In this document: one piece after another, positions 1 to 64,000 of the stretch
Layout of the letters: each line of letters starts with the position of its first letter
How positions within the stretch are numbered: position 1 is the first letter of the stretch
From: Anthoceros angustus
Taxonomy: Eukaryota > Plantae > Anthocerotophyta
Reading direction: 5' to 3'
NCBI GenBank assembly: GCA_010909165.1
Contig: MU008165.1
Span: 1 to 64,000, forward strand
DNA length: 64,000 nucleotides
Program-made: the position numbers and the translations under genes
Notes under the pieces: generated by a model
Databases searched by the model: none
Seen by the model: only the letters and a program-made list of their open reading frames with translations
Told to the model about the DNA's origin: nothing

Positions 1-2698
1 CATGCATAAAGACTTGACCATACTAGTTACTTGGGCTGCCAAGTGCACATTGCGACCAGTTCATGATCTGGGGCTCCAACGTCGATGTCGTCCTCGTGCC
101 TCTCCTCTTAGGAATGGTTGCAGTCAGGTGATCACATCCTTGGGATGTTTGGAACCCAGCGCATCTTATGGCTTCCCGCCACCTTCATGATGGCCTTGGT
201 TTGGCGTTCCGTCTTCCTTGGATCGCCTTGCGCTCAATCCCCAAGGCAGGTTAACGGTGCCTTCTCCACCTTCTCCCGGTGGTGTCTTGATTGTACTAGG
301 GTGGGGCTTACAGGCATCGGAAGTTGCTAGCCGTCTTTGGCGCTTCGGTGGTGGTAGGCTTCCCTCCAACAGGAGGCTTTGCTTGCTGCCAAGGCTCGTG
401 TAGAATCCGCACAGCAGTTGGAATAGGTCCTGGGTAACGCAACAAACCCGCGTCGTTGCAAGTTGCTTGGCCAGGCAGGTGAATATGCTCATGTTGCCGA
501 GGCTCTTGATCCTCCCTGGCCCGCCAGAGAACATTGTTGCCCTCCGTGCCCTCCATCCAGCACCCAAGGATGCCATCTTCCGGACATGTCGGCTATATCA
601 CGGAGGATCCCTTCTCCACATCGGGCGGCTTTTGCTCACTCTCTCGACCCATGTCTTTCATTTGCCGGGTTGTTAGGAATGGTGTTTGAACACCTCAGGG
701 ACCTTTTTTTCCCCAAAGATCCATCTAGTGGCTTCCCAAAGCTCTTTTCTCTAGCCGCTGCGGTGGCTCGTGGTGAGACGCCTCACCGGATTTCCAATGT
801 TCTTGTAGCTAGCAGGCTTGTCGCTATGGACAAGCCTGCCCCGGGCTCGGGCGTGCGCCCACTCGCGGTCGAGGAAGCCTTCATGCGGCTTCTCAATCGC
901 ACTATTGCCCTTCAGTGCCGCTCTCTTCTCTAGCAGCACATCAACCCCCTTCAATTTGGCATTGCCACTCCGGGGGGCTGTGAGTCCGTGGTGCTTGGAG
1001 TGAAGGCATGCCTTGACATCCACCCAGAGTGGGTGGTCTTACAGGTTGATGTCGAGAACGCCTTCAATACCATTTCTAGGAGTGTCATCTTTGAGGAGCT
1101 TAGGGATGCTGGTGACGTCCTGGGGAGCCTTATACCTTTTGTCCGGTGCTTCTACGGGAGGTCCTCCAACCTCTACTACCCGGCCTGAGAATGTCTCTTG
1201 AGTTCTTGTCTCTGTCTTGGAATCGGCCATAGGTACCAGGCAAGACGACCCCCCGGGCAGTACTCTCTTCGCCATTGCTCACTATAGGGCCCTATCTAGG
1301 GCCGCCTTCTCAATGTGTATTTATGTCTTCCCTTATTTGTGATTCTCACATCCTCGGGCCTAGTGACAAAGTCAAGGAGGCCTTTGAGCTCTTTTCTCAT
1401 GAGCTTTATTTGGTGGGCTTGAAGGTCAAGTTGTCCAAGTGCGTCGGTCTCCATCGATTCTACCTACTTTGCGGTTCCTGTGGGAGATTACTCGGCCTCT
1501 GGGATTCTAGGGGTCCCCTTCGGTTCCCCTGACTTCATTGGGAGCTTCCTGGACCAAGCTCTCGCAAAGGACCTCTCCATGTCGAGGACCTCCCTTTGCT
1601 AAAGGATACACAAGTGGCCTATGGATTTCTTTCCTCTTGTTTTGCTAGGCGCCATTTTACCTCATGGTCTGCCGTCCCCAACCTTTTGTCCCGATTCGGT
1701 TTGATAGGAAGATTATGGATACTCTTGGGGACATCTTGGGCTCAAGGGCTTTTGAGTGCCCTATGGCGTCGGCCCAGCAAGCGTCCCTCGTGTGCAATTT
1801 GGAGAGCACTCTCATGGAGGTCTCTTCCCGTGGCTTTCACAGGCGATTGGGCCCTCTATACCCCTACTTTGGCTTCTCGCTTCATCCTCCATGACAGGCC
1901 CTTTCTGGAGGATCTCGTTTCAGGTATGGAGGAGGGAACCTTCTCTCTCCAAACGTCCTTGAGGCAAGCTAGGGACATGTTATCAGTGGATGCTCGGAAG
2001 GACTTCCCTCCTTTCTCGACATTTATTACTGATGGTTTCAGAGGGTTGCAGGAGGGAAGGCTCGGCGGGCTTTCCTACATCCTCGGGGACCCCTCCATCC
2101 CCAATTCCACAAGGCGGCTCCGCTCTTGTTTGGGAAGGCGCAGTGGCAGCTCGCCCGCCCATGCATATGGGGTTTTCACATCGCACCAACCACCTTTACT
2201 ACTGCGATGCGATTCCGTCTTGGCCTGCGAGTGCGACTCTACCCTTGATGATTCTGGGGTACACCTTGCTCGTTGTCCCCACGAGGGTCATTGCATTGCC
2301 ACTCACGATGCCATCCATGATGTCATGTTCGCCATCGCTCGTGAAAGTGACTACATGGCCTGGAGGGAGCGGGTGTATACTCTCCGTACAGGTCATTCAA
2401 TCAGGGCTGACTTGTACCTTGTCATGGTGACCCGGGTTTGGTGGCGGATGTGGTGTTCGATCCTACGTGACACCATCTCACTTTCGAGTCATCACTAACC
2501 GTCAGGTTAGTGCCCGGCCGGGCAACGGCTCTCAAGGTCAGAAAATATAGCAGGATGTGTGGAGTGCCAAATCCGATGTCAGTACTCTTGGCGGCTTGTT
2601 TTGCTTTTGGTCGTTCTTGTTAAGAGGATAGGGAAGAGTTAGCCAATAAGGCCATTTGCGGATTATACGGTGCAATCCCTAGACCCTCAGTCCGTTGG

Positions 2699-4379: not shown

Positions 4380-5620
4380 TACAAAATAAATTTCTTGTTG
4401 GTGCTGGTCGTTGTATGTTGTTTCATATGAGTTTGGCTCCAATCAATTTTTTGGGTTGAAGCGGTTCGAACAACTGCTTATCTTATGAATAGGGTTGTTT
4501 CTGATGTTCTTATGTAGCTAACTCCCAAGGTGTTGTGGACTGGTAAGGTTCCTCCTTGTTCACACTTTTACGTGCTTTCGGATGTGTAGCTTTTGCTCAT
4601 ATTCCAAAAGAGAAAAGATCAGCTAACTATTAAGTGTATTTTTGGTGGATATTGTGAGAATTCTATGGGTTGTCGTTTGTTTGATCATAGTACTCGACAA
4701 ATAATTTCAAGTTGAGATGATTTTTTCTGTGAAGATTTGTCTTGAAAAGATTCGGTTGCCTCTTCTCAGTGATCATAATCTTATTTTTGAACAATTTCCT
4801 TTTTTGTTACCCTCAAATCGATTACTTATTTCATGATTCTGTGAATGATGTTCAAGATGATCTTCATAATGATCATGGTGTGGACGCATACGTTGTTGAT
4901 GAAGTAGTCACACCGTATCTTTCAAATTCTCATAATATATTTGCAAATAAAATTCCTTGTGCGTCTCCTAATGTTTCACAGGGTTCTGCTACGGTTCGTC
5001 TAGTATAAATTGGGTTTGCCACAACATGTAGTTCGTCGTTCTTCGCAGTTACATATTACTGCTCATCGACAACTAGAATTTTATGAAACTGAGGATGTCG
5101 TTGCTCTTTCTTCTGGCTGTTCTCGCGAAGCCTCAATCAATTGTTGAAGCATAGGCTTCAGCCAAGTGGTCTTTGTCCGAGCATGCTTTGCAAGACGAGT
5201 AAAACTCACCATTGCAAAATGGAACATGAAAGCTTGCTCCACTTCCTTAAGGTCGGAAAACGGTTGGTTGCAAGTGGGTACTTAAAATAAAATACAATGA
5301 TGATGGGATTTCATAAAGCTCGACTAGTTTTTAAGAGATATTCACAAGTTGAAGATGTTGATTATAAGCAGACTTTCTCACCCATTGCGAAATTTCCTTT
5401 TGATTGTGTTTTATTTACTTTGGTTGCTTTCTTCAATCTTGAAATGTGTCATATGGATGTGAAGATTGCTTTGAATGGTGATCTCGATGAAGAAATTTAT
5501 AGAGAGTTATTTAAATGGTAGTGTGGATGAGGAGATTTATATTGAGCAACCCGACCGTTTAGTGATGATATAAAACATTTACTTGGACTTGGTTTGGTTT
5601 GCAAGTTGAGAGGATGAGAA
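4380..5620 (+). mobile_element. Degenerate Ty1/copia pol fragment (integrase C-terminus to RT)
   Basis: GRCMLFHM..FWVEAVRTTAYLMNR and FGCVAFAHIPKEKR (integrase); VGCKWVLKIKY, KARLV..YSQVEDVDYKQTFSPIAK and MDVKIALNGDLDEEIY (RT). Multiple stops; AT-rich. Confidence 0.9.
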
Positions 5621-5703
5621 TTTTTCATTTCAAATTGTTGTAGAACCCCCTCAAGATATTTAAATGGGATGCCTCATCAGGCGTGCGGTTCTGGATTCTT
5701 GCT

Positions 5704-6079
5704 TATGTTGCCACAAGGATTTGAGCTCAAGTCTTTACTGTTCCACTACGATTTCCTACCACTACCACTACAACAATAACAATAACTTTATTTATGTCCA
5801 TTAGGATGGAAAAACCACCATGGGACAGAACTTATACAGCCCTAACTTGGATAGAGGGTATACACATATATACATCTGAACTGGAGAAACAAAAACTGAA
5901 AAAAAAAGGCGCATCATGCATCTCAGAAAGACCGAGAGCATAGAGCTTGGGAATATGAAAGAAAAAAAAAGCGGCTGCGGGGAAGACTTGCACACTAAAC
6001 TAAAGCCACTTCTTGTTGGGAATATGAAAGGGAAAAAAACGCTGCAGAGAAAAACGTGCACACTAAACTAAAGCCACTT
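5704..6079 (-). pseudogene. Decayed tRNA-His copy split by a LINE 3' fragment
   Basis: 5704-5764 aligns to the 3' two-thirds of the tRNA-His at 11191-11262, and CACTAAACTAAAGCCAC (6061-6077) aligns to its 5' end. Confidence 0.55.
5765..6062 (-). mobile_element. 5'-truncated 3' tail of the RTE-X-like LINE family
   Basis: CAACAAT..ACTTTATTTATGTCCA and GGAATATGAAA...GCACACT match the LINE 3' end at 29583-29900. The last ~68 bp are duplicated in tandem. Confidence 0.7.
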
Positions 6080-6368
6080 CTTGTATTAAATATGTTTTTC
6101 GGTACTCCCCCGACGCTACGGTGCTTGATGCCAAGGTATTCAAGCTCTCACAAAGGTAGAAAGCGCCTCATGTCTTGCTTCACAAGGTGGGATCTTGCCT
6201 CATCTCTTGTCAGCGCTCGGGCCGCGACTGGGTCAGCCGGGAACGCGTGTCTGGACTTGGGACACTATCTCACCATGGAAATCTTTCTCTTCTTCGATCA
6301 CGGAGCTATGACAGAGCTCTACATATCCCGCAGCGATAGCGCAATGCAGACCTAAATTGCACTGCAGG

Positions 6369-9300
6369 ATGACCGCCACCGGGATGTCTGCCGATGTGGA
6401 ATCACCTGCTTCTTCATCCGGCGGAGAAGCTGCATCAGCGGACGCATGCGCAGCGGCAGGAAATGCCGAACGCTTCCGTCGATCCGTCGTTGCCTCTCTC
6501 CGCGAACAGGACTACCATGCAGCCTCCCATCTCTGGGGGAATTTCTCGAATGGTTGGGACAAGTTTAGCGAACAGGGTCGGGACAGGTGGATTGTGCGGC
6601 CCCCGGCAGCCTTGCTCAAGCTTGGGTTGGAAGCAGTGTCAGGGGCACTTGATGGGTGGGAAATGCAGCGTCTCAATGAGCTAGCTGACGAGCTCATCGC
6701 CTGTGGAGACGAAGAGGAGCCCATGGTGGATGTGTGCCAGGAGATGCGTGAGCTTATACAACGAGTGATGCAGGCCGTGGTCATCGCCAATGAGCTTCAA
6801 AGCTCGGAGTCATTCACAGAGGCGCAGGATTGCACTCTGTTGATACTCATTTGGGCCTTCACTTGGGTTGAAACCTTGCTTCTGGAGGATGCCATGCTTG
6901 GGGATTGTAGCCCAGAGGAGATGCACACTATCAGCTCCAGGTGGGAAACCCTGCACTTGTCCTGGCCTAGAGCATTGCACCGGACGAAGGAGACACTTGA
7001 CGCTTTCCGACGAGTAGCACTGTTCTCCTGCGGCCAAGAAAGGGAGGCTCTCGAAAATTATGTAGCGCCAGACTTCTGGGAAGGGTTTGAAGCTTGTTTT
7101 CTGTGTGTCGTCATCTCCGACATGTGTGACCCCGGTCGTAGGAATGTAGGAAGGCTTAGTGCCGGGTATGCTAACTTGAGCCAGATAGGAAACAGGTGTC
7201 TGAATTGGCTTCACCGTGCTGAAAGAGCTGTTCCGCGCAACCACGAGCACTGGCCTCTTGTCAGAGCCTGGGTCCTCCTGTTGCAGGGGTCGTCCTTGAG
7301 ACAGTTCGGTCGGATCGAGCTGAGTTTTCAGGCTTGTGACAACGCACTCAAACAGATTCAACAGATAGATCTTCAACCCCGATTCGAGTTCCCAGTGCCG
7401 CACCCCAGTATTGAATTTCTGAAGTTGCAGCTGCTGGAATTCTTGGCCCGGCACAATCACCGCACAGGTTGTCAATTCATTGGATTAGTACCTGAGGTTG
7501 GGCAAGAGGTCATGGACCGGTTAGACGGCGTGCAGAGCTATTTCCAAGCCCGGTATGCATGTTACTGGCTTCGGCTGCGAGGAGAGCAATTGATCACCCA
7601 TTTTGGACAGGTCGAGGAGGGACTGGAGGTATTTGAAACATGTCTTGCCAAGTTCGGTGCCGATTCTGTTGACAGCACAATTCGCCAACCGTGGTTAGAG
7701 GGGGAGATTTTTGAAATTTGTCATAGAAGAATCAACTGGGATGTGACCAAAGTGGTTCACCTGGACAGGGTAGAGAGGCTTCAGGCATTTATTGTTGCGC
7801 ACGGGGAGTCCTTGCAAGCGTCAGCTCTTGCCCATTCGTTCTTTCGGAATGCGTGGGCTGTTTTTGGATTCTCGGGGCCTGCTAAGTTCATGCCCTTTCC
7901 TGTGCCTGCACCGACACCCAGCGCTGCTGTACTGGACACATTCTGGGAATCCTACAGGGATACTTGTGCCGCATTGTCACTTTGCAGTGCTACAGAGCGC
8001 CACTACCAAGTGAAGAACTTGGGTGATGGCAAGAAAGTGAAGGTCTTTGTCGATTCGTGGTTCCCCTACTTCTGTCTATTTCACGTCCATCTCCTGGCGG
8101 ACACCGTCTCTAAGCTTTTGGGGCGAAACGTAGGAGCGGCAGATGGTGAGATTGCTCGCCAAGCTTTGCTCTCTCTCGAGGGTGCTAGGAATTACAAACT
8201 GCCCCACATCGACTGGGAAGGAATCGAACGAGCCCACCGGGCCTGCGGTCCTGGTGCAGTGTTTGTGCTGTTCGCATGTCTGGACTCGAGGTTGTCAGCG
8301 TCTGCAGGGGTGCCGGACGTGTGCATTGTGGTGCAGGATGAAGGTGTGGCCTCGTGCCACAGGTTGGATTGGATTCACTCGGACAGTATACTAGAAAATG
8401 TCCAGGAAATTAATGATGCTTGTCTTGAGAGCAAGCTTGAGAATGACGGCTGCCGGATTGCTCTGGAGACGTTGTACGACCTGCTCATCAGGCCGCTCTT
8501 CCACAACTTCATCCGGGACCAGAATTGGACCCCGCATCGCAAGTTGGTTATCTCCCCGGTTGGTCGTGTCCAGGACGTGCCTTTCAGCATCCTTAGGAAC
8601 AGGGTCTCTGGCTGCTATCTTTTCCAAGAGGTGAAACTGGCCGTCACACCGTCTTTCCTAATGCTCGACTTGTGTCGGTTCTGGTACAAGTCACTCCAGG
8701 AGAGGACATTGCTTGCGGGTGCAGGGGCTGCAGTGGCCTTGGGAGATCCTCAATACTTGCCTTACCGAGGTCCTCCGTTGCCGGAAAGTCGGAATGAGGT
8801 CGAGGCCATATGCAAGCTATTTGATTTTTGTCAACCTGAGCATGAGATTGTGAAGCTGTTGGGTAGTGATGCCACGGTAGAAAGGCTGTGGGAGTGGGTG
8901 AAGAAGCCCTCAGGTGTGGGAAGTGGCACCCAATGCAGCCAAGCCTTCATACATATCGCAGCTCACGGCTCCGGTGGCAAGGAAGCCGATCACGGGACTC
9001 TCAGTTTGGCCCAAGCTACCGAAACCAGAAGGAGCCGCCGAGCAGCACAGGGCAAGCTTAAGGTAACGAGGGACGAAGCTGCGTCTTCAGATGACGAGAG
9101 CTATGAAGAACCTGAGGCTTCGGTCTCCTCAGATATGGATGCCCTACCTTCTGGGCTTTCTGAGCACCACATGTTGCAGCGAGAGGCGGATAGGGCAGTG
9201 GAAGGCTTGGAGTTTCTTTCTGGACTTCCATTACGCAGGTCAGATGTCGGGAGTAGCTTGCACTGCGATGATGTCATGTTCTCAGGTCCGACGTGGTTTG

Positions 9301-9671
9301 CTTACATGGTCGTCCTCAGCGCCTGCAGCACGGCTGTCGGAGTAACCCTTAATCTAAACGTCCTCGATGTCCTCAACTTCGGTCGCGCATTCATGAACGT
9401 GGGAGTTCCCTGCTCTGTTCTGGCTCAATGGCGTGTAGATGATAGGGCCACTGGGCATCTCATGCCCCTGCTTTACGAGGCACTATGCCAAGGTGAGGAC
9501 GCGTGCTCGGCCTTGCAGTCCGCCATGATCAAGATGCACCAGACTGGGAAGTACACCCTCCACAAATTAGCTCCGTTTGTAGTAACTGGCTTGCCCACAG
9601 TCTGCTTACCACCACAGATGCGGAGAGGCCAGGCTGAGCTCGCTTCGTCCATCTCCAAACTGCATACCTGA
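6369..9671 (+). CDS. Intronless helical/TPR-like plus CHAT-domain (caspase/HetF, clan CD) cysteine protease, ~1100 aa
   Basis: Uninterrupted ORF, first ATG at 6369. CHAT motifs in order: LYDLLIRPL, LVISPVGRVQDVPFSIL, ALGDP, PLPESRNEVEAI, LLGSDAT, FIHIAAHG (His codon 8964), VVLSACST (Cys codon 9324), GRAFMNVGVPCSVLAQWRVDD, ALQSAM, APFVVTG. The N-terminal ~550 aa are rich in amphipathic helices. Confidence 0.9.
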   Translation: MTATGMSADVESPASSSGGEAASADACAAAGNAERFRRSVVASLREQDYHAASHLWGNFSNGWDKFSEQGRDRWIVRPPAALLKLGLEAVSGALDGWEMQRLNELADELIACGDEEEPMVDVCQEMRELIQRVMQAVVIANELQSSESFTEAQDCTLLILIWAFTWVETLLLEDAMLGDCSPEEMHTISSRWETLHLSWPRALHRTKETLDAFRRVALFSCGQEREALENYVAPDFWEGFEACFLCVVISDMCDPGRRNVGRLSAGYANLSQIGNRCLNWLHRAERAVPRNHEHWPLVRAWVLLLQGSSLRQFGRIELSFQACDNALKQIQQIDLQPRFEFPVPHPSIEFLKLQLLEFLARHNHRTGCQFIGLVPEVGQEVMDRLDGVQSYFQARYACYWLRLRGEQLITHFGQVEEGLEVFETCLAKFGADSVDSTIRQPWLEGEIFEICHRRINWDVTKVVHLDRVERLQAFIVAHGESLQASALAHSFFRNAWAVFGFSGPAKFMPFPVPAPTPSAAVLDTFWESYRDTCAALSLCSATERHYQVKNLGDGKKVKVFVDSWFPYFCLFHVHLLADTVSKLLGRNVGAADGEIARQALLSLEGARNYKLPHIDWEGIERAHRACGPGAVFVLFACLDSRLSASAGVPDVCIVVQDEGVASCHRLDWIHSDSILENVQEINDACLESKLENDGCRIALETLYDLLIRPLFHNFIRDQNWTPHRKLVISPVGRVQDVPFSILRNRVSGCYLFQEVKLAVTPSFLMLDLCRFWYKSLQERTLLAGAGAAVALGDPQYLPYRGPPLPESRNEVEAICKLFDFCQPEHEIVKLLGSDATVERLWEWVKKPSGVGSGTQCSQAFIHIAAHGSGGKEADHGTLSLAQATETRRSRRAAQGKLKVTRDEAASSDDESYEEPEASVSSDMDALPSGLSEHHMLQREADRAVEGLEFLSGLPLRRSDVGSSLHCDDVMFSGPTWFAYMVVLSACSTAVGVTLNLNVLDVLNFGRAFMNVGVPCSVLAQWRVDDRATGHLMPLLYEALCQGEDACSALQSAMIKMHQTGKYTLHKLAPFVVTGLPTVCLPPQMRRGQAELASSISKLHT

Positions 9672-10002
9672 AGCTCAAGGCTGTGAGAAAGCTAGTAGTC
9701 TCCAACGGGAAGATAGTCTCCAGTGGGAAGTATCTCCAACAACGTGAGTCACTCACTTTGTTGCTCCTATACATCTCTGTACACCTCTGTCGATCAGCAG
9801 TGCACAGCTTGATGTTGGTCATGTTGAAAGAGTTCTCAGAATTGCAAGAGTACGCCGGACTTGGTGATTTTTTGTAAGCGATCACATTTCACCGCTTTCC
9901 GTTAGGGAATCGGCCTTAGTACACCTATATAAAGATCGAGCAACAGTTGCACACCTCCTGCATCGACAGGACTACTGCCAAATGCACGGCGTTCATCAAC
10001 TT

Positions 10003-10531
10003 CTCAGCACACATAGGAGGTGACAACACACAGAAAACAAGCTTCAAACCCTTCCCAGTAGTCTGGCGCTACAAAATCTTCGACAGCCTCGCTTTCTTGG
10101 TCGCAGGAGAACAGTGCTACTCGTCGGAAACCGTTGAGAGTCTTCTTCGTCCGTTCCAATGCTCCAGGACAGGAAAGGTGCAGGGTTTCCCACTTGGGGC
10201 TGATAGTGTGCAGTCCTCTGGGCGACAATCCCCAAGCATGGCATGCTCCAGAAGCAAGGTTTCAACCCAAGTGAAGGCCCAGATAAGTATCAACAGAGTG
10301 CAGTCCTGCCCCTCTGTGAATGACTCCGAGCTTTGAAGCTCATTGGCGATGACCACGGCCGGTGACACTTGTTGTGTAAGCTCACGCATCTCCTGGCACA
10401 CATCCACCATGGGCTCCTCCTCGTCTCCACAGGCGATGAGCTCGTCAGCTAGCTCATTGAGACGCTGCATCTCCCACCCATCAAGTGCCGCTGACACTGC
10501 TTCCAACCCAACCTTGAGCAACGCTGCCGGG
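10003..10531 (-). pseudogene. Inverted partial duplicate of the CHAT gene 5' region (6602-7125)
   Basis: Encodes PAALLKVGLEAVSAALDGWEMQRLNELADELIACGDEEEPMVDVCQEMREL...APDYWEGFEACFLCVV, near-identical to the main ORF. There is a 1-nt frameshift near 10212, and no start codon or CHAT domain. Confidence 0.92.
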
Positions 10532-26354: not shown

Positions 26355-28958
26355 ATGAGCTTCTTTGATTGTGGAAGAAGGCTGACTCATGTTGCTGCCT
26401 TGCAGCAGGTATACAAGGAGATTCGGGTTGTCCAGAATGCAGGCAGGGGAAGTGGGTCAAGGATGAGGATGATAGCAGTGGCCATTGAGCAAGATCAAGC
26501 ACGTGGTCGATGGAGGCCCTGGCTACCTCCTATGCCTGGTGATATGGATGCTGGGAGTTCGGGGAAGGAGGATAAGAGGTAGTGCTCAGAGGTGTGTAAC
26601 TTTGGCAGCCAGGGGCTCTGCAGGGATGTTGACATTGCTGCCGAAGCTTATAGATGAGCATGCTTGGTCTTACAGGGGGTGATGATGCCTATGCCTTGGG
26701 ATGAGCCGGAGTCGAGGCGGAGTGGCTTGGAAAATGGGAGAAGAAGTGTCCAACGGGGCACGCCAAGGAGGAGGGTGGTAAGGTCAGCAGAGGAGGAAGG
26801 GGAAGGCAAGGAAGGCCCTAGGCAAGCTGGTCGTCCTCCTGTGGATGTTGCAGAACTGTGCAATGAAGGGCGGTTGAAAGAAGCCATGGGCGTTCTCCTG
26901 ACCTTGGAGGAGAATGGGTCCAGGCGGTACACTGCAGTTTATGCTTCTCTGTTGAACTGTTGCATCAAGAGGAAAGCACTGGCGGAGGGAAGACGTGTTC
27001 ATGCACACATGACTAAAATTGGGTTTAAGCCTGATATGTTCTTGTCAAATACTCTTGTGCATATGTATGCCAAGTGTGGGAGCATGGTGGATGCACGCCA
27101 GTTTTTTGATCAGATGGCTATGCGGAATGTGGTTTCGTGGACAGTTGTGATTGCGGGCTATGCCCAACATGGGCACAACATTGAAGCACTGAAGCTGTTC
27201 AGTAGAATGGAGAGGGAAAATGTGCAGCCAAACAAGGCTACTCTTGTGACCATTCTGAACGTGTATGGGAGCTTAGCAGACCTGGAGGGGGCAAGCGGGT
27301 GCATGAGCTTGCTGTTCGGGCTGGTTACAACTCTGACCTGTTTGTTGGAACTGCACTCATCTCGATGTATGCTAAGTGCAAGAGGATGGAAGAGGCACGA
27401 CAGGTTTTTCACAGATGTCAGAGCGTAATGTGGTGGCATGGTCTGCTGTGATTGCGGGCTATGCACAGAATGGATCTGGAGAGGAGGCTTTTAGGCTGTT
27501 TCGTAAAATGCAAGAGGTAGGTGTGGAGCCAAATGAGGTCACCTTGCCAGTATCATCAATGTGTGCGCTAGCCTTGAGGCACTGGAAGAGGGCAGACAAG
27601 TCCATGCGCATCTCGTCAAGCGTGGCTTTGGGTCGGATGCTTTTGTCAACAGCTCTCTCATTCATATGTATGCCAAATGCGGCAGCATCGAAGAGGCTCG
27701 GGGGCTGTTCAACAAGCTTCAACGACGAGATATGGTTGCCTGGACTTCCATCATAACTGGATACAATCAACAAAACCAGCCTCAGGAGGCACTAATGCTG
27801 TACAAGCAAATGCTGCAGGAAGGGGTGAAGCCTGGAAAGCATACTCTTTCCTCTGTCTTGAATGCATGTGCCAGCCTTGCCGCCTTGACACATGGTAAGC
27901 AAGTGCACCAGCTGATCATCAAGCTCGGGTTTCAATCGGATGTCTTCATTGCTAATGCTCTTATCGACATGTATGCCAAAAGCGGCAGCATCGAGGATGC
28001 AAAAGCAGTGTTTGAAGGTATCAGGAAACCAAATGTGATCTCCTGGACCAGCATGATTGCCGGATATGCCAAGCATGGATTGGGCTGGGATGCGCTTCAG
28101 CTCTTTGAAAAGATGCAGCGGAAAGGCGCGGAGATCAATCATGTCACCTTTGTGAGCATATTGACGGCCTGCAGCCATGTGGGTTTGGTGAATGAAGCTC
28201 GCTACTATTTCGACTACATGAAGAGGATACATAACATTACCCCAACAGCAAAGCACTATGCTTGTCTGGTTGATGTTCTTGGCCGTGCTGGGCGTCTGGA
28301 TGAAAGTGAAGAACTGGTAGCTAAGATGCAGTGTGAACCAAATGCTGTAGTGTTCAAGGCATTGCTCGGGGCCTGTAGAATCCATGGAAATGTCGAACTA
28401 GCAACGCATGCAGCCGAGCGCATACTCGAGCTGGAGCCAGGTGACAGTGCAGCTTTTATGCTGCTTGCGAGCATATATGCTGCAGCTGGCAGAAGGGAGG
28501 ACGAAGCACGAGTCAGGAGCTTGATGAAGGAGCGGGGTGTGAAGAAGGAGACTGGACAAAGCTCTATTGAACTCAGAGGCCAGGTGCACGTGTTCATTGC
28601 AGAGGATAGACAACACCCACAAACCAAAGAAATCTATGCAAGACTGGACAGCCTCATTACAAACATCAAGTCAGCAGGATATGTCCCTAACACAAGCCTG
28701 GTGCTGCATGACATAGAGGAAGAGCAGAAGGAGCAGTCCATCTGTCACCACAGCGAGAAGCTGGCCATTGCTTTCGGGCTCATCAACACCCCTCCAGGAA
28801 CAACACTCCGCATCATGAAGAACCTACGTGTGTGTGAGGACTGTCATACTGCCACCAAGTACATCTCAAAGGCTGTCAAACGGCAAATTATTGCAAGAGA
28901 TGCAAACCGTTTCCACCACTTCAAGGACGGGAAGTGCTCTTGTGGAGACTACTGGTAG
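26355..28958 (+). CDS. PLS-class PPR protein with E and DYW cytidine-deaminase domain (organellar C-to-U editing factor); three -1 frameshifts in this sequence
   Basis: PPR motifs (DMFLSNTLVHMYAKCGS, NVVSWTVVIAGYAQHG, etc.). DYW domain HHSEKLAIAFGL..KNLRVCEDCH..RDANRFHHFKDGKCSCGDYW*. Probable intron ~26579-26674; start codon uncertain. Confidence 0.9.
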
Positions 28959-35419: not shown

Positions 35420-38400
35420 GCCGCAGGAGCTATTGGTACACAGGAAGTAATGAGGCACATAACACGAGGCCAGCGCAAATTGTTTTGCCTTCGGCATCCC
35501 ATAAGTCATGGGGCCATGCCCACTCGCATGTCCACACCATCCCGCACACGTTACCGTTGGACGGCAACAGCTGTGCCGCGCCCATTTGGACGCCCGTTCC
35601 GCCAAACTCCGTCCCTAAGTTGTGCCAGGGCATAGTTATTCCAGGAAAACGAAAACGGGCGGGCAAAACGCTTTGGTTTCAAAACACATGTTAATGAAAG
35701 CCTCCGGACCTTCCTCGCTCAATTACTCGAGTGTGTCACACCAAGCTAGTAATGTGCGTTGCTGATCACGCTATGGGAAGTGGTATGATGGTCCTTGTAG
35801 GTGCGGGAGGCGTGCACGTACGGGAAGTGCTGCGGTGGAGTCTGGATCTCATAAGGAAACCTTGCCATCTACAGAGGTAGCATAACACCCGACGTCAAAA
35901 TGCTTAACCGGCCCCGAGATTAGACTAATTAAATGATCTCTGTGAAGCAATCACAACTCTCGTGAATCGGCGGAGGCGAAACTTACACTTCTTGTGAGAT
36001 GAACTACAAGCACATAGTCATGTCCACCAAGGGTGCATCACTTTGGAGACGGTTGTCAGATCTGGAACCATACGCACAGCAATACCTTATGTATTGTTTT
36101 GGTGTGGTTGGTGACAGGACATTATACTTACGTGCCTCTGCCCTGGACCTGGAAGTCGAAGGAGCAAGGTGGCTTGTGGGGAGAGCAGGAAAGTAGGTTG
36201 TGAGTTTGTGGTTGTTATTACTCAATTGGAGTTGTTTCAAGATATTGCTCAAATCCGTTTTGATCGGTGGCATCATGTGAATGCCTCGTGACTTTTGCCA
36301 TGGATTGTTAGCAGATGCACTCACGTGCTCTTGCTCCTTCTTTATCGCAAGCAAGAGAATGGGTGAAGCACAAACTTTTGTGCAAAACCACTCCATACCA
36401 GATTTTATGTGATCACGAGCGATGTCTATGTTAGGATGCAAGGGGATCCTAACGCTGTCTTACATAGAGATGATTTTCTCTTGCCTAAGGACATACGCAA
36501 CTTGCAGGCTGAGTTGGATGCAAGGACTTGGAGACTCCATACCATTGATGAAGTCAGTGTCAAGCTATGGATTGACATCCACAGGGATATTGTTTTCTTC
36601 CCACCACCTGGTGCTTCGATGGAGGGCACACATTTTACTTTAGGGTTTCAAACAAGATTCTAGGAGGAATGCATGCTTCACTGGGGGCATCAATCCATCA
36701 TTTCAATGGATGCCACATTCGGCACCAACAAGTGGAAGGTTAGATTCTTTGCATTTCAAACACAAGATTGTGGGATTCTGGCTTCCTAACTCGCTGTCTC
36801 TTTATTTCAATTTCAATTGTTCACTTTGCTGGTGTTCGATGATCACCGCAATGGCATACCAGTGGCCTGGGTAGTGACCAGTCAATCTACTGCAGAACAC
36901 ATGGCCATGTGGTTAACGGCTTTGCAAAGGAAATTGCAGTCACTACGGTTAGATTGGCATCCTACGGCTTTCCTTGTCGATGACTGTGCAGCGGAGATAA
37001 AAGCAATTCGGCAAGTATTTGGCAGCACAACTCTTGTGTTCCTCTGTCTATGGCATGTACGGGCGTGGTTGCGGCTCTTGAAGAAAGTCAAGTCCGCAAG
37101 TAACAGGGCAGCCATGATGAAGGCCTTGGGAAATGTTATGTACATGGACATGGACTCAAGGAATGATCTAGCATCAGCCCAGATGAAGCTTCAAGAGTTT
37201 TACGAGGTGTATGGTGCCTCGGAAGCCAGTTTTGTGCATTATTTTCAGCAGCAGTGGGGGGATGTCATGGACATGTGGATAAAGGCAGTAAGGACTATAC
37301 CTCATGCAGGCCAAGACTGCAACTCTTCGATCGAAGCTTATCATCGTCACCTTAAGTACCGTTGTCTCCTCACAAAGAAGAATCTTCGTAGCAGACGACT
37401 CGACTGGCTTTTACATATCCTGACGGACGAAGTGAATGACATTTTTGGTACCAAAGACAATGTAAGCGGAGTGGCATCATTAGGAATAATAAGCAAGAAC
37501 AGGTTGTCAGAAGTGCACTGAACAAAGCATTGGAAATCCCAGAGTCCGATGTATCCCTACCTTGTACTGGGCAACCATATGCTATCGTGAGGAGCGAGAA
37601 TGCAAAGAAGGACAAGGCTTATCATGTGTTTAACGCCGGCTCTCCTTGGGGCAGCTGCACATGCAAGATTTCATCTACAGGGTTTCTTTGTAAGCATCAA
37701 GTGAAGGTCATGATGCTCTTGCAGGAAGTAGTGCCCACAGAAACCCTTGTGGGTATATATGCATCAGTGGCTACTTCACAGGAATCGTATAGACAAGCAC
37801 CTCTATTTTCTGCTGGGGAGGCTGAACTTTGTGGTAGTGTTCGAAACGAGCTGACAATTGTGCATCGTCCTTTGTCACAAGCTGTGGGTGCTGGAACAAA
37901 TGGGATTACGAGAGCTCCTGTCCCCCGCCAAATGAACTTAGCAACTGTTTGGGAAAACATATCAAGTTTAGTGCAGAGGAAACCTGGCATTGAGGCCCAT
38001 GCAGTTGCACTGATACAGGGTGTGTTCCAGCAGTTAGAGGGTGTGGCTGCAGAAGCTGAGGAGAATAGTCTAATGCAGATTCCATACCTCTTGCCAATAG
38101 GCGAAGCGTCCGACAATAGCTTGAAGAGGAAGAAACCGTTTTGGGAAAACAGTCTATCATGGAAACTGCCTCCGAAGGCAAAGCGCCCTACATTTGCTGA
38201 ACAAGCTGCAGGGAAGGCTGCCTTCAGTGAATCGATTAAGTAGAAATGCCGATCCTTGCCGATTGTGCAAAGGCTGGCCACGTTTTTCTTTGCTCACTCA
38301 CCTGCAAACGCGATTGTCGCAATCCATCTTACAACCAGAACTCCGTTGTTTGGGGTCCAAAACACAATACAGACATATCATTCTGTAACCCCTGCATAGA

Positions 38401-59788: not shown

Positions 59789-61552
59789 TCAGTCCGAGTC
59801 CGAGTCGTCTGAGTCCGAGTCGTCCGAGTCTGAGTCCGATTCCGACTCTGAGTCCGCGGCAGTACAAACAAACCAAGGACAGATGCTGACATGAGCACGA
59901 CCTTCTTGGGAGTCGAACCTTGGCTGGAAAAGGGAAAGGTTGCTGTGCGGAGATCTAAGCCCTTCACTACCCATTTTCAGCTGCATCCACCGCACCGACC
60001 CGCAAGACAGGTTGCAGACTAGCACCAGATGCAACCCCTGATTAAAGCACGAGAACCTCGGATTTCGGATGGTGAAGATCCAGACGATGTCGTCGTCAGG
60101 CATGTAGCAGTAGTCCACAAACTTCCAGGGGCACCAGGGCCCTCCCCAAATCTCAGACTTGCTCTCGATGCGGACGATTAGATGCAGCTTCCAGGACTGA
60201 TTCCTCTCCCCCTCCTGAACAAGCTCCCAGATTTGAATGTGCGAAGGACCGTAGATACTGACCCGGTCCCTTTTCGGCAGGTCCGGAACCGGGGGCAGCA
60301 TCACTGCGCGCGACGTGTTCCTGCCATCCACAACGGGTGCCTCGTGGGTGACCACCAGCATGCGGGAGCTGTCGTGGGTCTGGACAGGGAAGATCCGATC
60401 GTCCCTGCCGTTGGGAGCCACGACCCTTTCCCACCTCTTCGTCTTGATATGGTAGGCGAGCAAGACACTGTCAATACACCAGTTGTTCCCTCTGGACGGG
60501 GTGCCGTTGTCTGGGCAATCGATCTCCCTGTAGCTGTAGAAGATTCCTGCATCGCTGTAATACTGGATCCTGCCCGTGCTGACGTCCTTGGTCCTGCTGT
60601 TCGGCAGAATCATGTTGGGCCAGTGGTTGCTAAGGCTCCAGGAATTGGTCACGGAGTCGTACACCGCGGTGAGAGCCCTGGAGGTATCTGCGGTCACCTC
60701 ATTGGAGGTCCCTATGACAACAACCCTGTACGCTCCCGCATTGTGGCGCCTCGTGTCCACCACCATGTCCAGCTCCCTGGGGCACATGAGCCAGGAGCCC
60801 GCATCCGGCCTGGCAGCCCTCAAGGGCGGCAGCTCCCACCTCGCCCTGGTCAGAGGATTGCACATGAAAATGCGAGATTGCCACCCGTCATGGTCCTCCA
60901 GGGGCGGATCGGACGGGTCCGAAATCGGGATCGCCCGCTGGAAGTTGAAGGCGTAGCAGATGAAGCCTCCAGATACACAGACCAGGCTTAACCCACTAAA
61001 CCCAGCCATCGTGGAAATCGAAAAAAAGGTGCGCTCGGGGTCGGCGGCACGGAACCGGCGGCCCAGCTCCCAGGCTACCAACTTCAAGGCGATTCCTGAA
61101 GGCCCAGTGTTCGTCCTGATGAGCATGGAGCTGTGGCGATGGCGCGCGTCTCCGTCTTCGTCTTTGACCTGGCTCCAGCTTCGCACGAAGTGCGCAGACT
61201 GCACCAACGACCTCCACTGCTTGCACACATAATTGAACCGCCACAAGTCCTTCACAGGCAGGAAGAGCAGCACCCGCTCCTGCAGCTCCTGAGGCAGGAA
61301 CCGCCACACGGCCGGATCCATTTCCTCCGCTTGCTTCTCCTCCTGCCTCGGTACAGCAAGCTCCTGTCCCGCACTTGGGCTTCCTTCCATACCCACCAGC
61401 TTAGTCTCCGCCTCAGAGCCTCCAAGCGAACCTTTAGGTCTTTCCCAACGCCCTGAACAGGAACGGAAAGACGGTGGACAACGACGGAAAGCAGGCCCAG
61501 GACGGGCCCCACTTCCTGCCACGGTCTTCGAGATTTCCTCCCTCGCTCCCAT
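59789..61552 (-). CDS. Intronless F-box protein with kelch/FBA-like C-terminal region
   Basis: MDPAVWRFLPQELQERVLLFLPVKDLWRFNYVCKQWRSLVQSAHF (F-box), SGGFIC, MCNPLTRARWELPP, VYDSVTNSW and LFQPRFD, followed by an acidic SD tail. Confidence 0.9.
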   Translation of the reverse strand: MGAREEISKTVAGSGARPGPAFRRCPPSFRSCSGRWERPKGSLGGSEAETKLVGMEGSPSAGQELAVPRQEEKQAEEMDPAVWRFLPQELQERVLLFLPVKDLWRFNYVCKQWRSLVQSAHFVRSWSQVKDEDGDARHRHSSMLIRTNTGPSGIALKLVAWELGRRFRAADPERTFFSISTMAGFSGLSLVCVSGGFICYAFNFQRAIPISDPSDPPLEDHDGWQSRIFMCNPLTRARWELPPLRAARPDAGSWLMCPRELDMVVDTRRHNAGAYRVVVIGTSNEVTADTSRALTAVYDSVTNSWSLSNHWPNMILPNSRTKDVSTGRIQYYSDAGIFYSYREIDCPDNGTPSRGNNWCIDSVLLAYHIKTKRWERVVAPNGRDDRIFPVQTHDSSRMLVVTHEAPVVDGRNTSRAVMLPPVPDLPKRDRVSIYGPSHIQIWELVQEGERNQSWKLHLIVRIESKSEIWGGPWCPWKFVDYCYMPDDDIVWIFTIRNPRFSCFNQGLHLVLVCNLSCGSVRWMQLKMGSEGLRSPHSNLSLFQPRFDSQEGRAHVSICPWFVCTAADSESESDSDSDDSDSDDSDSD

Positions 61553-61952: not shown

Positions 61953-64000
61953 TCAGAAGCCTCCGTAGCCTCCACTGTTAAACCCCCCACCACTACCGTA
62001 GCTTCGGCTCCCTCCACCACCACCACTTTTCTGGCTGTTGGGACAGCTGCTCGCCCAGTGCCCAGATTGGTTGCACTTGAAGCATACGTCTTTGTCCCGT
62101 CCACCACCCTGACTACTGCTCATAAAGCCTCCGCCTGAGTTGCCAAAACCGCCTCCTCCAGAGCTGCCATAGCCGCCTCCTCCAGAGCTGCCATAGCCTC
62201 CTCCTCCAGAGCTGCCATAGCCGCCTCCTCCAGAGTTGCCATAGCCGCCTCCTCCTCCTCCAGAACTGCCGTAGCCTCCCCCAGAGTTGCCATACCCTCC
62301 TCCTCCTCCTCCTCCTCCAGAGTTGCCATACCCACCTCCTCCACCTCCAGAGTTGCCGTACCCACCTCCTCCTCCTCCAGCGTTGCCGTACCCACCACCT
62401 CCTCCTCCAGAGTTGCCATAACCGCCTCCCGTAGAGTTGCCAAATCCACCTCCCCCGGAGTTGCCAGACTTCCCTTCATTTGGGCAGTCTCGGGCGTAGT
62501 GTCCTTCCGCCCCGCACTTGAAGCAACCACTTCTAGAGCTGGACCCATTAGATGTGTTGTTGTCATACGTTTGACCATATGAGCCCCCTCCACCGGAGAA
62601 GCTGGCACCTGTTTGCCTACCGGCATCACCGCCATGGGGAGTGAAACCAGCCCCTTGCGAACCAGGTGTCGCGCCTGCCGTGGACAGCACATTGATCGGC
62701 TCACCCCTTACTAGCTTGCCAATGAGGTCCACCAGCAGCTGGGACTCCTGGATGTGGTTCACCCGATTACTACTTACCAAAGTGCACTTAACTCGCTGCT
62801 CGTCGTTGTAGCTCTCCTCCTTCACCTTCAACTTGAAGAGGTGCTGAGAGAGGTTGACATTGCGCAGTATTTCCCCGAATTTCGCAGAATCGTCCTGTTT
62901 CAGCTGGTGCAGTTCCTTAGCAGGAACTCCCATGAGCCCCTCCCCTGCCTCTTGAAAAGCTGTCACCCACGTTGTGCTAGTGTGGTCTTGCAACTGCATT
63001 TGGAGCATGTACTTATAGTCACATTCTTCAACCGTCTGATTGCATTTCTCACACCTCCATGTCCCATCTCCCATGCTGATCACTTTTTTGTTGCATTGTC
63101 TGTCAGCCGACTTCAGAGGGCAAGCAGTGTAGTACAAAGTATCTCCTTTGATGAAAGCGATGGTAGCCCGCACAAGAATCCAATCAGGCTTGTCCGATCT
63201 TCCGAGTCCCTCATCCTTAATCTGGGCAAGAGTTTTACGTAGCTCCGGTCTACTAGAAGTACCTCCTTCCCTGGAGACCGATTGACAAGGCATATTCCTG
63301 CCCTCCCGATCATACCATTCCCTCAACACGTGTGCTTCTGGGAGATCCGGATTGATCAATAGCAAACTGGTTGATATGGTTCCCACAGACTTGCCACTGA
63401 AATCATTCACTCGACCTGCCTTGAAAAGCAATACCGGGCACTGTCCTGAGTCACACAGCTCCTGAAGCTCCTGACCGGGCTTGCTACAAAATTCCCCCCA
63501 CATGGTCACCTCCACACTCTTCCCGGACCTATCCACGAGCTGAAGAGTCCGCTTTTGTGTCTCCTGGCCTGTCTTCCGGATGATTGGACTTGTGGGATTC
63601 ACAACAGTAACTATGCCTATGACATCAACCACAGCGCCAGTTTCCCTTTCTTCGATGCTGCTGACGGGAACAAAATTGTATTGCTGCTGCGGAATCCCAC
63701 CATCGTCAGGAGATGGCTCCAGTACCGACGTATGATCCAGAGTCAACTCCCACTCACTCTTCAAGTGGTTGAACTTTCGATCCGCAGCTTTCAGAGTGCC
63801 CTTGGATAGCATATACACCCGTCCCACTTCGACAATGTCAAAAATCTTATTTGCAACATCGTTGAAAGCAGTGGCCCGTATTTCACCGCCATCCGCATCA
63901 AGCATATCAAAACTGAAAACTGTTCCTGGCCCGTTCGCCTTATTGTACCTCTTCTTCGGCGATTTCCCAGTTACCCTAGCTTTGATTGTCCACCTGCCCT
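61953..64000 (-). CDS. RPA1: Replication protein A 70-kDa subunit with C-terminal CCHC zinc knuckles (RPA1C-like); 5' end outside the window
   Basis: GRWTIKARVTGK, GEIRATAFN, KPDWILVRATIAFIK, YTACP..CNKKV..WRCEKC, QDHTSTTWVTAFQE, two CX2CX4HX4C knuckles separated by GGGGYG(N/S)S repeats. Confidence 0.95.
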   Translation of the reverse strand, partial: GRWTIKARVTGKSPKKRYNKANGPGTVFSFDMLDADGGEIRATAFNDVANKIFDIVEVGRVYMLSKGTLKAADRKFNHLKSEWELTLDHTSVLEPSPDDGGIPQQQYNFVPVSSIEERETGAVVDVIGIVTVVNPTSPIIRKTGQETQKRTLQLVDRSGKSVEVTMWGEFCSKPGQELQELCDSGQCPVLLFKAGRVNDFSGKSVGTISTSLLLINPDLPEAHVLREWYDREGRNMPCQSVSREGGTSSRPELRKTLAQIKDEGLGRSDKPDWILVRATIAFIKGDTLYYTACPLKSADRQCNKKVISMGDGTWRCEKCNQTVEECDYKYMLQMQLQDHTSTTWVTAFQEAGEGLMGVPAKELHQLKQDDSAKFGEILRNVNLSQHLFKLKVKEESYNDEQRVKCTLVSSNRVNHIQESQLLVDLIGKLVRGEPINVLSTAGATPGSQGAGFTPHGGDAGRQTGASFSGGGGSYGQTYDNNTSNGSSSRSGCFKCGAEGHYARDCPNEGKSGNSGGGGFGNSTGGGYGNSGGGGGGYGNAGGGGGGYGNSGGGGGGYGNSGGGGGGGGYGNSGGGYGSSGGGGGGYGNSGGGGYGSSGGGGYGSSGGGGYGSSGGGGFGNSGGGFMSSSQGGGRDKDVCFKCNQSGHWASSCPNSQKSGGGGGSRSYGSGGGFNSGGYGGF
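62128..62470. repeat. Coding low-complexity tandem repeat (24-36-bp units, GYG[NS]SGGGG)
   Basis: CCAGAG(T/C)TGCC(A/G)TA(G/C)CC.CCTCCT repeated about 11 times. Confidence 0.9.

Follow-up and report, generated by a model that had tools for sequence, protein, structure and literature searches.

Positions 1 to 64,000 of the forward strand of contig MU008165.1, from the Anthoceros angustus (Anthocerotophyta) assembly GCA_010909165.1, constitute the window analyzed here, a stretch of 64,000 nucleotides that carries a long open reading frame (ORF) for a protein with a CHAT domain. This ORF occupies 6369–9671 on the plus strand and runs without interruption through 1,100 codons, from an ATG at 6369 to a stop codon at 9669–9671, with an in-frame TAA at 6354–6356 shortly 5' of the start. 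The reading frame itself, the Pfam match and the upstream in-frame stop together identify it as the single-exon coding sequence (6369–9671, stop included) of a 1,100-aa CHAT protease. The product consists of an N-terminal region (aa 1–615; 6369–8213, plus strand), predicted to be all-helical and TPR-like in shape only, without sequence relatives, and a CHAT domain (aa 616–1090; 8214–9638, plus strand) composed of a pseudo-caspase lobe and an active caspase-like lobe, which was delineated with Pfam and by the confidence of the structural model (predicted local distance difference test [pLDDT], ~90). The predicted catalytic dyad comprises His866 (codon at 8964–8966), the second histidine of an H-x3-H-G motif and invariant in the family alignment, and Cys986 (codon at 9324–9326) of an L-S-A-C motif, invariant in both family alignments; between them lies an acidic, mostly disordered insert (approximately aa 880–960; 9006–9248, plus strand), recognized from pLDDT and from comparison of the His–Cys spacing. 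No intron needs to be invoked, given that the ORF is continuous and collinear with its relatives over the CHAT domain, and that the contigs of one of two public runs (X1, described below) are collinear with it as well. The G+C content of the third codon positions (GC3) is 0.59, and the order GC1 > GC3 > GC2 resembles that of the neighboring plant genes. An original prediction, made by a model that saw only the sequence, had described a clean ORF of about 1,100 aa without introns, with a helical N-terminus and a CHAT domain with its His at 8964 and its Cys at 9324; all these features are as described, with a length of exactly 1,100 aa and an all-helical N-terminus in the AlphaFold2 models. The locus holds an intact CHAT protease gene that belongs to a clade of bryophyte and fern genes, and its identity is settled.

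The match to the Pfam CHAT family (PF12770) is strong (E = 2.1e-35, 123 bits versus a cutoff of 24), and falls into two stretches because the insert splits the domain. At E-values up to 0.1, CHAT was the sole Pfam match, with no hit to C14 (metacaspase/caspase) or C50 (separase) families, in agreement with the predicted assignment to a noncanonical clan-CD protease of plants. In the family alignment, His866-Gly867 and Cys986 occupy invariant columns, as does His862; across a broader set of 121 other CHAT domains, the position of His866 is a histidine in 120 and that of Cys986 a cysteine in all 121. All 15 columns that are invariant in the 17-sequence alignment of the CHAT-domain family are retained, including both histidines and the cysteine, as well as Gly, Arg, Ala and Asp residues around the active lobe. 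Where conservation among the other members reaches at least 85% (53 columns), the protein keeps 42 (79%), and 8 of the 11 departures are conservative, Y/F, I/L and V/I among them. The spacing between the catalytic residues is 120 aa, within the range of 62–195 aa found in the plant clade; for 120 other CHAT domains, most of them bacterial, the median is 47 aa. The enlarged, acidic and poorly ordered insert is common to the plant clade, and in the present protein, pLDDT falls below 50 at residues 894–932 and 949–959 within it. This long-term pattern of conservation indicates constraint on the protease core, and proteolytic activity can be predicted from the intact His–Cys dyad and from the likeness to the family.

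To characterize the fold, a structural model was built with AlphaFold2 using the family alignment; all comparisons below thus refer to a predicted, not a solved, structure. Confidence is high for residues 600–1090 (pLDDT ~90), moderate for residues 290–600, and low for residues 1–290 and the His–Cys insert; the N-terminal region was modeled with approximately 23 helices. A Foldseek search of the PDB, a check that had been proposed along with the original prediction, retrieved Csx29 (E = 2e-11) and human separase (E = 2e-9), and also DdvA, gingipain and SAVED-CHAT. Structural alignment with VIA-align gave the highest score for Csx29 (Z = 30.7; 536 residues aligned, covering residues 283–1078 of the model), with residues 283–600 overlaying the Csx29 TPR arm, followed by the protease domain of C. 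thermophilum separase (Z = 28.1; root-mean-square deviation [rmsd] 3.4; 323 residues aligned, residues 594–1085 of the model); the human, yeast and worm separases scored between 24 and 27, and the rmsd for the separase match with Z = 28 lies between 3.3 and 3.4. Lower scores were obtained for gingipains (Z = 22), SAVED-CHAT (Z = 18.6) and caspase-9 (Z = 12), so that the caspase/hemoglobinase fold of the protease lobe is matched in the predicted model by separase, gingipain, SAVED-CHAT and caspase-9. In the ESM Atlas, bacterial and cnidarian TPR-CHAT clusters aligned over 600–677 residues (residues ~130–1084) with TM scores of 0.5–0.77. A single-sequence phmmer search against the PDB yielded nothing relevant, and the family profile matched those of solved CHAT structures weakly, around the Cys only.

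As regards shape, the Csx29, separase and Atlas TPR-CHAT matches support the originally predicted layout of a TPR-like arm followed by a CHAT protease; they do not establish canonical TPRs. No Pfam TPR family matched the protein at E-values up to 0.1, language-model neighbors are TPR clusters at similarities of only 0.89–0.91, and a match to the TPRs of KLC1 (Z = 11) lies below the noise limit that the aligner states for helical repeats, the N-terminal model itself being of low confidence. As a separate observation, the arm-plus-CHAT model is also matched over residues 283–1078, with Z-scores of 17–18, by components of the C1 apparatus of the ciliary central pair (Chlamydomonas 7n6g_1N and 7sqc_R0; mouse sperm 9ijj_B), a hint that axonemal proteins may contain a CHAT-like module.

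An exhaustive phmmer search of 1.84 billion cluster representatives produced 5,034 matches at E-values up to 1e-3, only two of which reached 1e-30; the best-matching stretches all lie within residues 609–1095, and the highest identity over the matched parts is 38%. A word-indexed search with the full-length protein returned one distant relative, and with the CHAT region, two weak bacterial matches; an exact look-up in a collection of 15 billion proteins found neither this protein nor four other ORFs of the window. The named top matches are annotated as 'CHAT domain-containing protein' in Riccia sorocarpa, Ceratodon purpureus, Adiantum capillus-veneris and Sphagnum jensenii, with Selaginella proteins ranking lower. 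In a maximum-likelihood tree of 118 CHAT domains, one of the checks suggested with the original prediction, built by a quick search with support from the Shimodaira–Hasegawa-like approximate likelihood ratio test (SH-aLRT) only and no bootstrap, the protein falls within a clade of 15 sequences (98% SH-aLRT) together with the Riccia, Ceratodon and Adiantum proteins, at the tip of a branch of 1.14, and the Selaginella-type group forms a separate clade with 100% support. One member of the group neighboring the plant clades comes from a cyanobacterium-like contig. In a locus of one such bacterial contig (GCA_039189765.1), two TPR-CHAT genes are arranged head to head next to two Peptidase_C14 genes and CHAT fragments, forming a cluster of clan-CD proteases. 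Given the 98% clade placement and the identity of its relatives, the protein is, on sequence grounds, a divergent member of a plant CHAT family of liverworts, mosses and ferns rather than a fresh bacterial import. The horizontal acquisition entertained in the original prediction is thus not supported as a recent event; the deep nodes of the tree are weakly supported and do not fix the ultimate origin of the plant clade. The predicted residence in a land-plant genome and the unfamiliar type of clan-CD enzyme hold, and the gene does not stand alone, being one member of a wider liverwort, moss and fern clade. Two relatives examined by tblastn have coding sequences split into several pieces, namely, the Riccia gene for KAL3683022.1 (3,627 nt for 1,030 aa) and the Ceratodon gene (6,339 nt for 1,427 aa).

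The front half of the family behaves differently from its core. BLAST comparison of the N-terminus with the fetched relatives detected no similarity, and the N-termini of the relatives are only 14–23% identical to one another. One clade member (P0008, from an ENA contig, locus L005, 527–4171; 1,214 aa) combines a PP2 lectin domain with a helical arm and CHAT, and some relatives have sub-threshold TPR matches. This diversity of the arms implies that the front half of the family turns over quickly, and the PP2 fusion suggests that sensor-type domains have been swapped at the N-terminus within the plant CHAT family. As judged from the sequences compared, the front half can change until it is no longer recognizable, with the protease core left intact.

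A further distinctive feature of the locus, not noted in the original prediction, is that part of the gene recurs nearby in inverted orientation. Codons 79–253 (6602–7128, plus strand) are duplicated on the minus strand at 10008–10531, 337 nt past the stop codon, as found by tblastn, a repeat search and blastn alike; the two copies share 91.8% identity across 527 nt, interrupted by a single 1-nt gap. An assembly fold-back was considered as the source of the inverted copy and is excluded by this divergence. A 161-aa ORF (10117–10602, minus strand) passes through the inverted copy. If it is co-transcribed by read-through, the copy could pair with the mRNA to give a long hairpin.

Evidence on expression and variation comes from the contigs of two public runs (X1 and X2) of one sample, X1 being taken for RNA by guess. 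In X1, depth is zero at 5200–6169, and coverage starts at 6315 and continues to 10055; one contig (9593–10055) crosses the stop codon and extends 48 nt into the inverted copy. A possible transcript of the covered span (6315–10055, plus strand) would begin with a 54-nt 5' leader and terminate 48 nt inside the inverted copy, a pattern that fits an unspliced mRNA and suggests transcription. X2 covers the upstream flank too, and among its contigs are some, ~97% identical, with a 1-nt deletion at 7700, which implies a broken near-copy or allele in that sample.

In the remainder of the window, we identified a PPR/E/E+/DYW deaminase gene on the plus strand (26664–27428 and 27561–28958), consisting of two same-frame ORFs about 130 nt apart that represent either an in-frame stop or two adjacent starts, a glutaredoxin/GRXCR-type gene (16336–18687), an F-box ORF (59789–61552), and, on the minus strand, a 650-aa RPA70-like ORF (61953–63905) with OB folds (REPA_OB_2 and Rep_fac-A_C) and CCHC zinc knuckles. 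RPA70-type OB folds accompanied by zinc knuckles are often found in Helitron-borne RPA copies rather than in cellular RPA70. A MULE transposase fragment spread over two adjacent ORFs (36817–38243, plus strand) is the sole Pfam-recognizable transposase found in the window. Directly after the inverted copy, at ~10756–11610, lies degenerate tandem-repeat debris that is PPR-like (direct repeats D3/D4, and a sub-threshold PPR_2 match in an ORF at 10756–11082) and looks like the remains of a PPR gene; contigs of both runs have loose ends at ~10597–10612 and 10910–10982, as if this stretch were repeated or rearranged in the sample. On the other side, a 300-aa ORF (1596–2498, plus strand) without a Pfam match has a Cys/His-rich tail and language-model neighbors that include zf-RVT and RVT_1 clusters at low similarity (0.82–0.84); as a lead only, it could derive from a non-LTR (long terminal repeat) retroelement. 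The CHAT gene had originally been placed among transposon debris, a description that holds only in part: the immediate flanks are the inverted self-copy and the PPR debris, the nearest Pfam-recognizable transposase lies at 36817, and the ORF at 1596–2498 gave weak reverse transcriptase-like leads only. CRISPR components were not seen among the ORFs scanned.

Taking these observations together, we favor, with somewhat better than even confidence, the interpretation that the locus carries an intact nuclear gene for a CHAT protease with a partner-gated arm and specific cleavage. In Csx29, separase and the fungal protein Q2L-6, a helical arm gates a specific protease; by analogy, the arm of the present protein would keep the protease inactive until a partner or ligand binds, whereupon His866 and Cys986 would cleave a specific substrate or a small number of them. 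Specificity or sensing would then reside in the fast-changing N-terminal arm, the acidic His–Cys insert might serve as a regulatory or self-cleavage loop, and the inverted partial copy may expose the gene to RNA silencing. By analogy alone, the protein might have a role in defense or cell death.

Several results weigh against this interpretation. The N-terminal 615 aa have no homolog in either the word-indexed search or the exhaustive phmmer search, and alignment of this region with the N-termini of ten clade members using hhalign gave a probability of 0.5%, that is, no relation; most of residues 1–290 have pLDDT below 50 in the whole model, and the N-terminus folded alone reaches a pLDDT of 40. 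Within the CHAT domain, the share of conserved columns retained is the lowest in the family, tied with P0023, the remaining members keeping 83–100%, and three family-conserved residues, His755, Gly1000 and Trp1067, have been replaced more radically. The variants observed within the ORF have nonsynonymous-to-synonymous counts of 10:3 in X1 and 22:8 in X2, approximately a neutral ratio, although these counts are small and some of the X2 differences in 6602–7128 may stem from the inverted fragment; recent evolution of the ORF thus shows no sign of purifying selection. Comparison of the gene with its inverted fragment yields a ratio of nonsynonymous to synonymous substitution rates (dN/dS) of 0.81 (31 nonsynonymous and 11 synonymous differences). 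A candidate substrate or effector, gasdermin-like or other, was not found within ~6 kb on both strands among ORFs of at least 90–100 aa, a scan in which no Pfam family other than the PPR debris appeared and which multi-exon genes could escape; the original prediction had likewise recognized no substrate gene. Finally, the assignment of X1 to RNA is a guess, and its contigs cannot prove RNA, strand or ends. With respect to the combination of absent expression and neutral dN/dS, to which the original prediction had assigned weight against itself, the recent variants are indeed neutral-like, and transcription is only suggested, by the X1 contigs.

The main rival, which we regard as unlikely but worth serious consideration, is that the gene is a recent duplicate under no functional constraint, perhaps retrocopied from a CHAT paralog with introns, whose frame is still open but which is drifting toward a pseudogene. 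The single exon, in the face of intron-bearing relatives, fits this scenario, as do the neutral-like recent variants and the dN/dS of 0.81 against its own fragment, the rearranged locus with its inverted copy and PPR debris, the broken near-copy represented by the X2 contigs, and the low share of conserved positions (79%). However, a stop-free frame of 3.3 kb is not kept for long without selection, the dN/dS value includes the neutral branch of a dead fragment, and the terminal branch, at 1.14, is within the range of the sub-clade (0.77–1.14). Moreover, the protein is only ~30% identical to every known relative, which implies that the CHAT gene is old, yet it has kept all invariant residues, with replacements that are mostly conservative. 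Retrocopy origin is possible: a poly(A) tract was looked for after the ORF and not found, but with ~30% identity to all relatives, the marks of retroposition would be long gone.

A less probable alternative places the main effect of the locus at the RNA level, whereby read-through into the 527-nt inverted copy would produce a long hairpin and small RNAs that silence the gene, and perhaps its paralogs, so that the protein would rarely or never be made. The arms of such a hairpin (6602–7128 and 10008–10531) are 91.8% complementary, and the X1 contig runs from the coding region past the stop and 48 nt into the inverted copy; against this, X1 depth drops to 5.5 at 10050–10243, the depth at 10244–10631 may come from cross-laid contigs of the forward arm (95% alike), and no paralog with the same N-terminal sequence was found. 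Furthermore, silencing would not exclude a functional protein, and is compatible with either the partner-gated protease or the drifting duplicate.

A more elaborate version of the protease hypothesis, to which we assign a slightly lower likelihood still, is a lineage-specific immune-type sensor protease with an orphan arm under diversifying selection, hairpin-controlled dosage and a substrate encoded elsewhere in the genome. Under this hypothesis, the excess of amino acid-changing variants would result from NLR-like diversifying selection on the arm, small RNAs from the natural hairpin with the inverted 5' coding copy would limit dosage, and the activated protease would cut a cell-death or signaling substrate. 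Bacterial DNA, as an assembly contaminant or a recent horizontal transfer, is by far the least plausible explanation and is largely refuted by tree, context and composition: most CHAT proteins are bacterial, the ORF has no introns and a cyanobacterium-like protein sits in the next clade outside the plant groups, but the gene groups in the 98% clade with nuclear genes of liverworts, mosses and ferns and has the clade-specific His–Cys insert, shares its piece of DNA with PPR-DYW, F-box and glutaredoxin genes of matching GC3, and is accompanied in situ by a diverged partial duplicate.

Work on clan-CD proteases of seed plants centers on metacaspases, VPEs and separase. Our literature search found no paper linking the CHAT domain with land plants, the CHAT and caspase papers retrieved being concerned with bacteria, fungi and corals; the plant CHAT family is present in public annotations and unstudied in the literature found, and the gene described here is a new, unusually divergent member. 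Bryophytes and ferns carry a second protease family resembling separase and Csx29, in several copies and with variable helical arms. Should the partner-gated protease be confirmed, this family would be a plant counterpart of the bacterial Craspase and the fungal gasdermin-cleaving CHATs, and a test case for losses on the route to seed plants. The locus by itself is a modest finding, with a function predicted by analogy; what it adds to the family is a member with a diverged front half and an intact core, a single-exon member, and a member that lies beside an inverted piece of itself.

The closest known proteins are the uncharacterized CHAT proteins of bryophytes and ferns (Riccia KAL3683022.1 and KAL3689802.1, Ceratodon KAG0608914.1, Adiantum KAI5077259.1 and Sphagnum CAK9271496.1), which share with the protein of the window the H-x3-H-G and L-S-A-C motifs, a C-terminal P-F-V-V-x-G-x-P-T motif, the acidic His–Cys insert and a long helical N-terminus ahead of the CHAT domain. 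Even within the CHAT domain, however, identity is 27–38%, and the N-terminus is not alignable; both relatives checked (Riccia KAL3683022.1 and Ceratodon) have introns, whereas the gene of the window has none, and nothing of the PP2 lectin found in one relative or the sub-threshold TPRs of some others is detectable in it.

Beyond plants, the top structural match is Csx29, the protease of the type III-E CRISPR 'Craspase,' with both the TPR arm and the two CHAT lobes covered by the alignment. Csx29 is gated by a partner and cleaves a single specific substrate (PMC10028731). Sequence identity between the two proteins is 10–12%, and their profiles meet only around the Cys (E = 0.14–0.21); the N-terminus of the plant protein is ~300 aa longer, its His–Cys spacing is expanded as noted above, and it has no association with Cas7-11 or Csx30, its context (PPR-DYW, F-box and glutaredoxin) being that of a eukaryotic nuclear gene. 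Separase (C50) has the same succession of a helical region, a pseudo-protease and an active protease, a likeness that is confined to the fold: the protein of the window has no Pfam C50 match, is shorter than the matched chains (1,018–1,684 residues) and groups with CHATs in the tree. Unlike separase, which is universal and acts in the cell cycle, the present protein is a lineage-restricted divergent paralog. Metacaspases and caspases (C14) are more remote, with no Pfam C14 match and only the caspase-9 score of 12. Among animal proteins, the cnidarian Atlas cluster annotated as 'tetratricopeptide repeat protein 28-like' aligns over 660 residues (TM 0.53/0.58), but the TTC28-like proteins have canonical Pfam TPRs, of which the N-terminus of the window protein has none, and no close sequence relation is seen. 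The fungal HET-Q2-like TPR-CHAT protein Q2L-6 of Podospora anserina, compared here by description rather than by sequence, is a eukaryotic protein of ~1,000 aa in which N-terminal TPRs precede a CHAT domain at the C-terminus, and this CHAT domain processes a gasdermin encoded by the adjoining gene (PMC8851545). No gasdermin-like gene was recognized within ~6 kb of the plant gene; Q2L-6 is, by analogy, the best functional precedent for a sensor-plus-protease switch controlling cell death.

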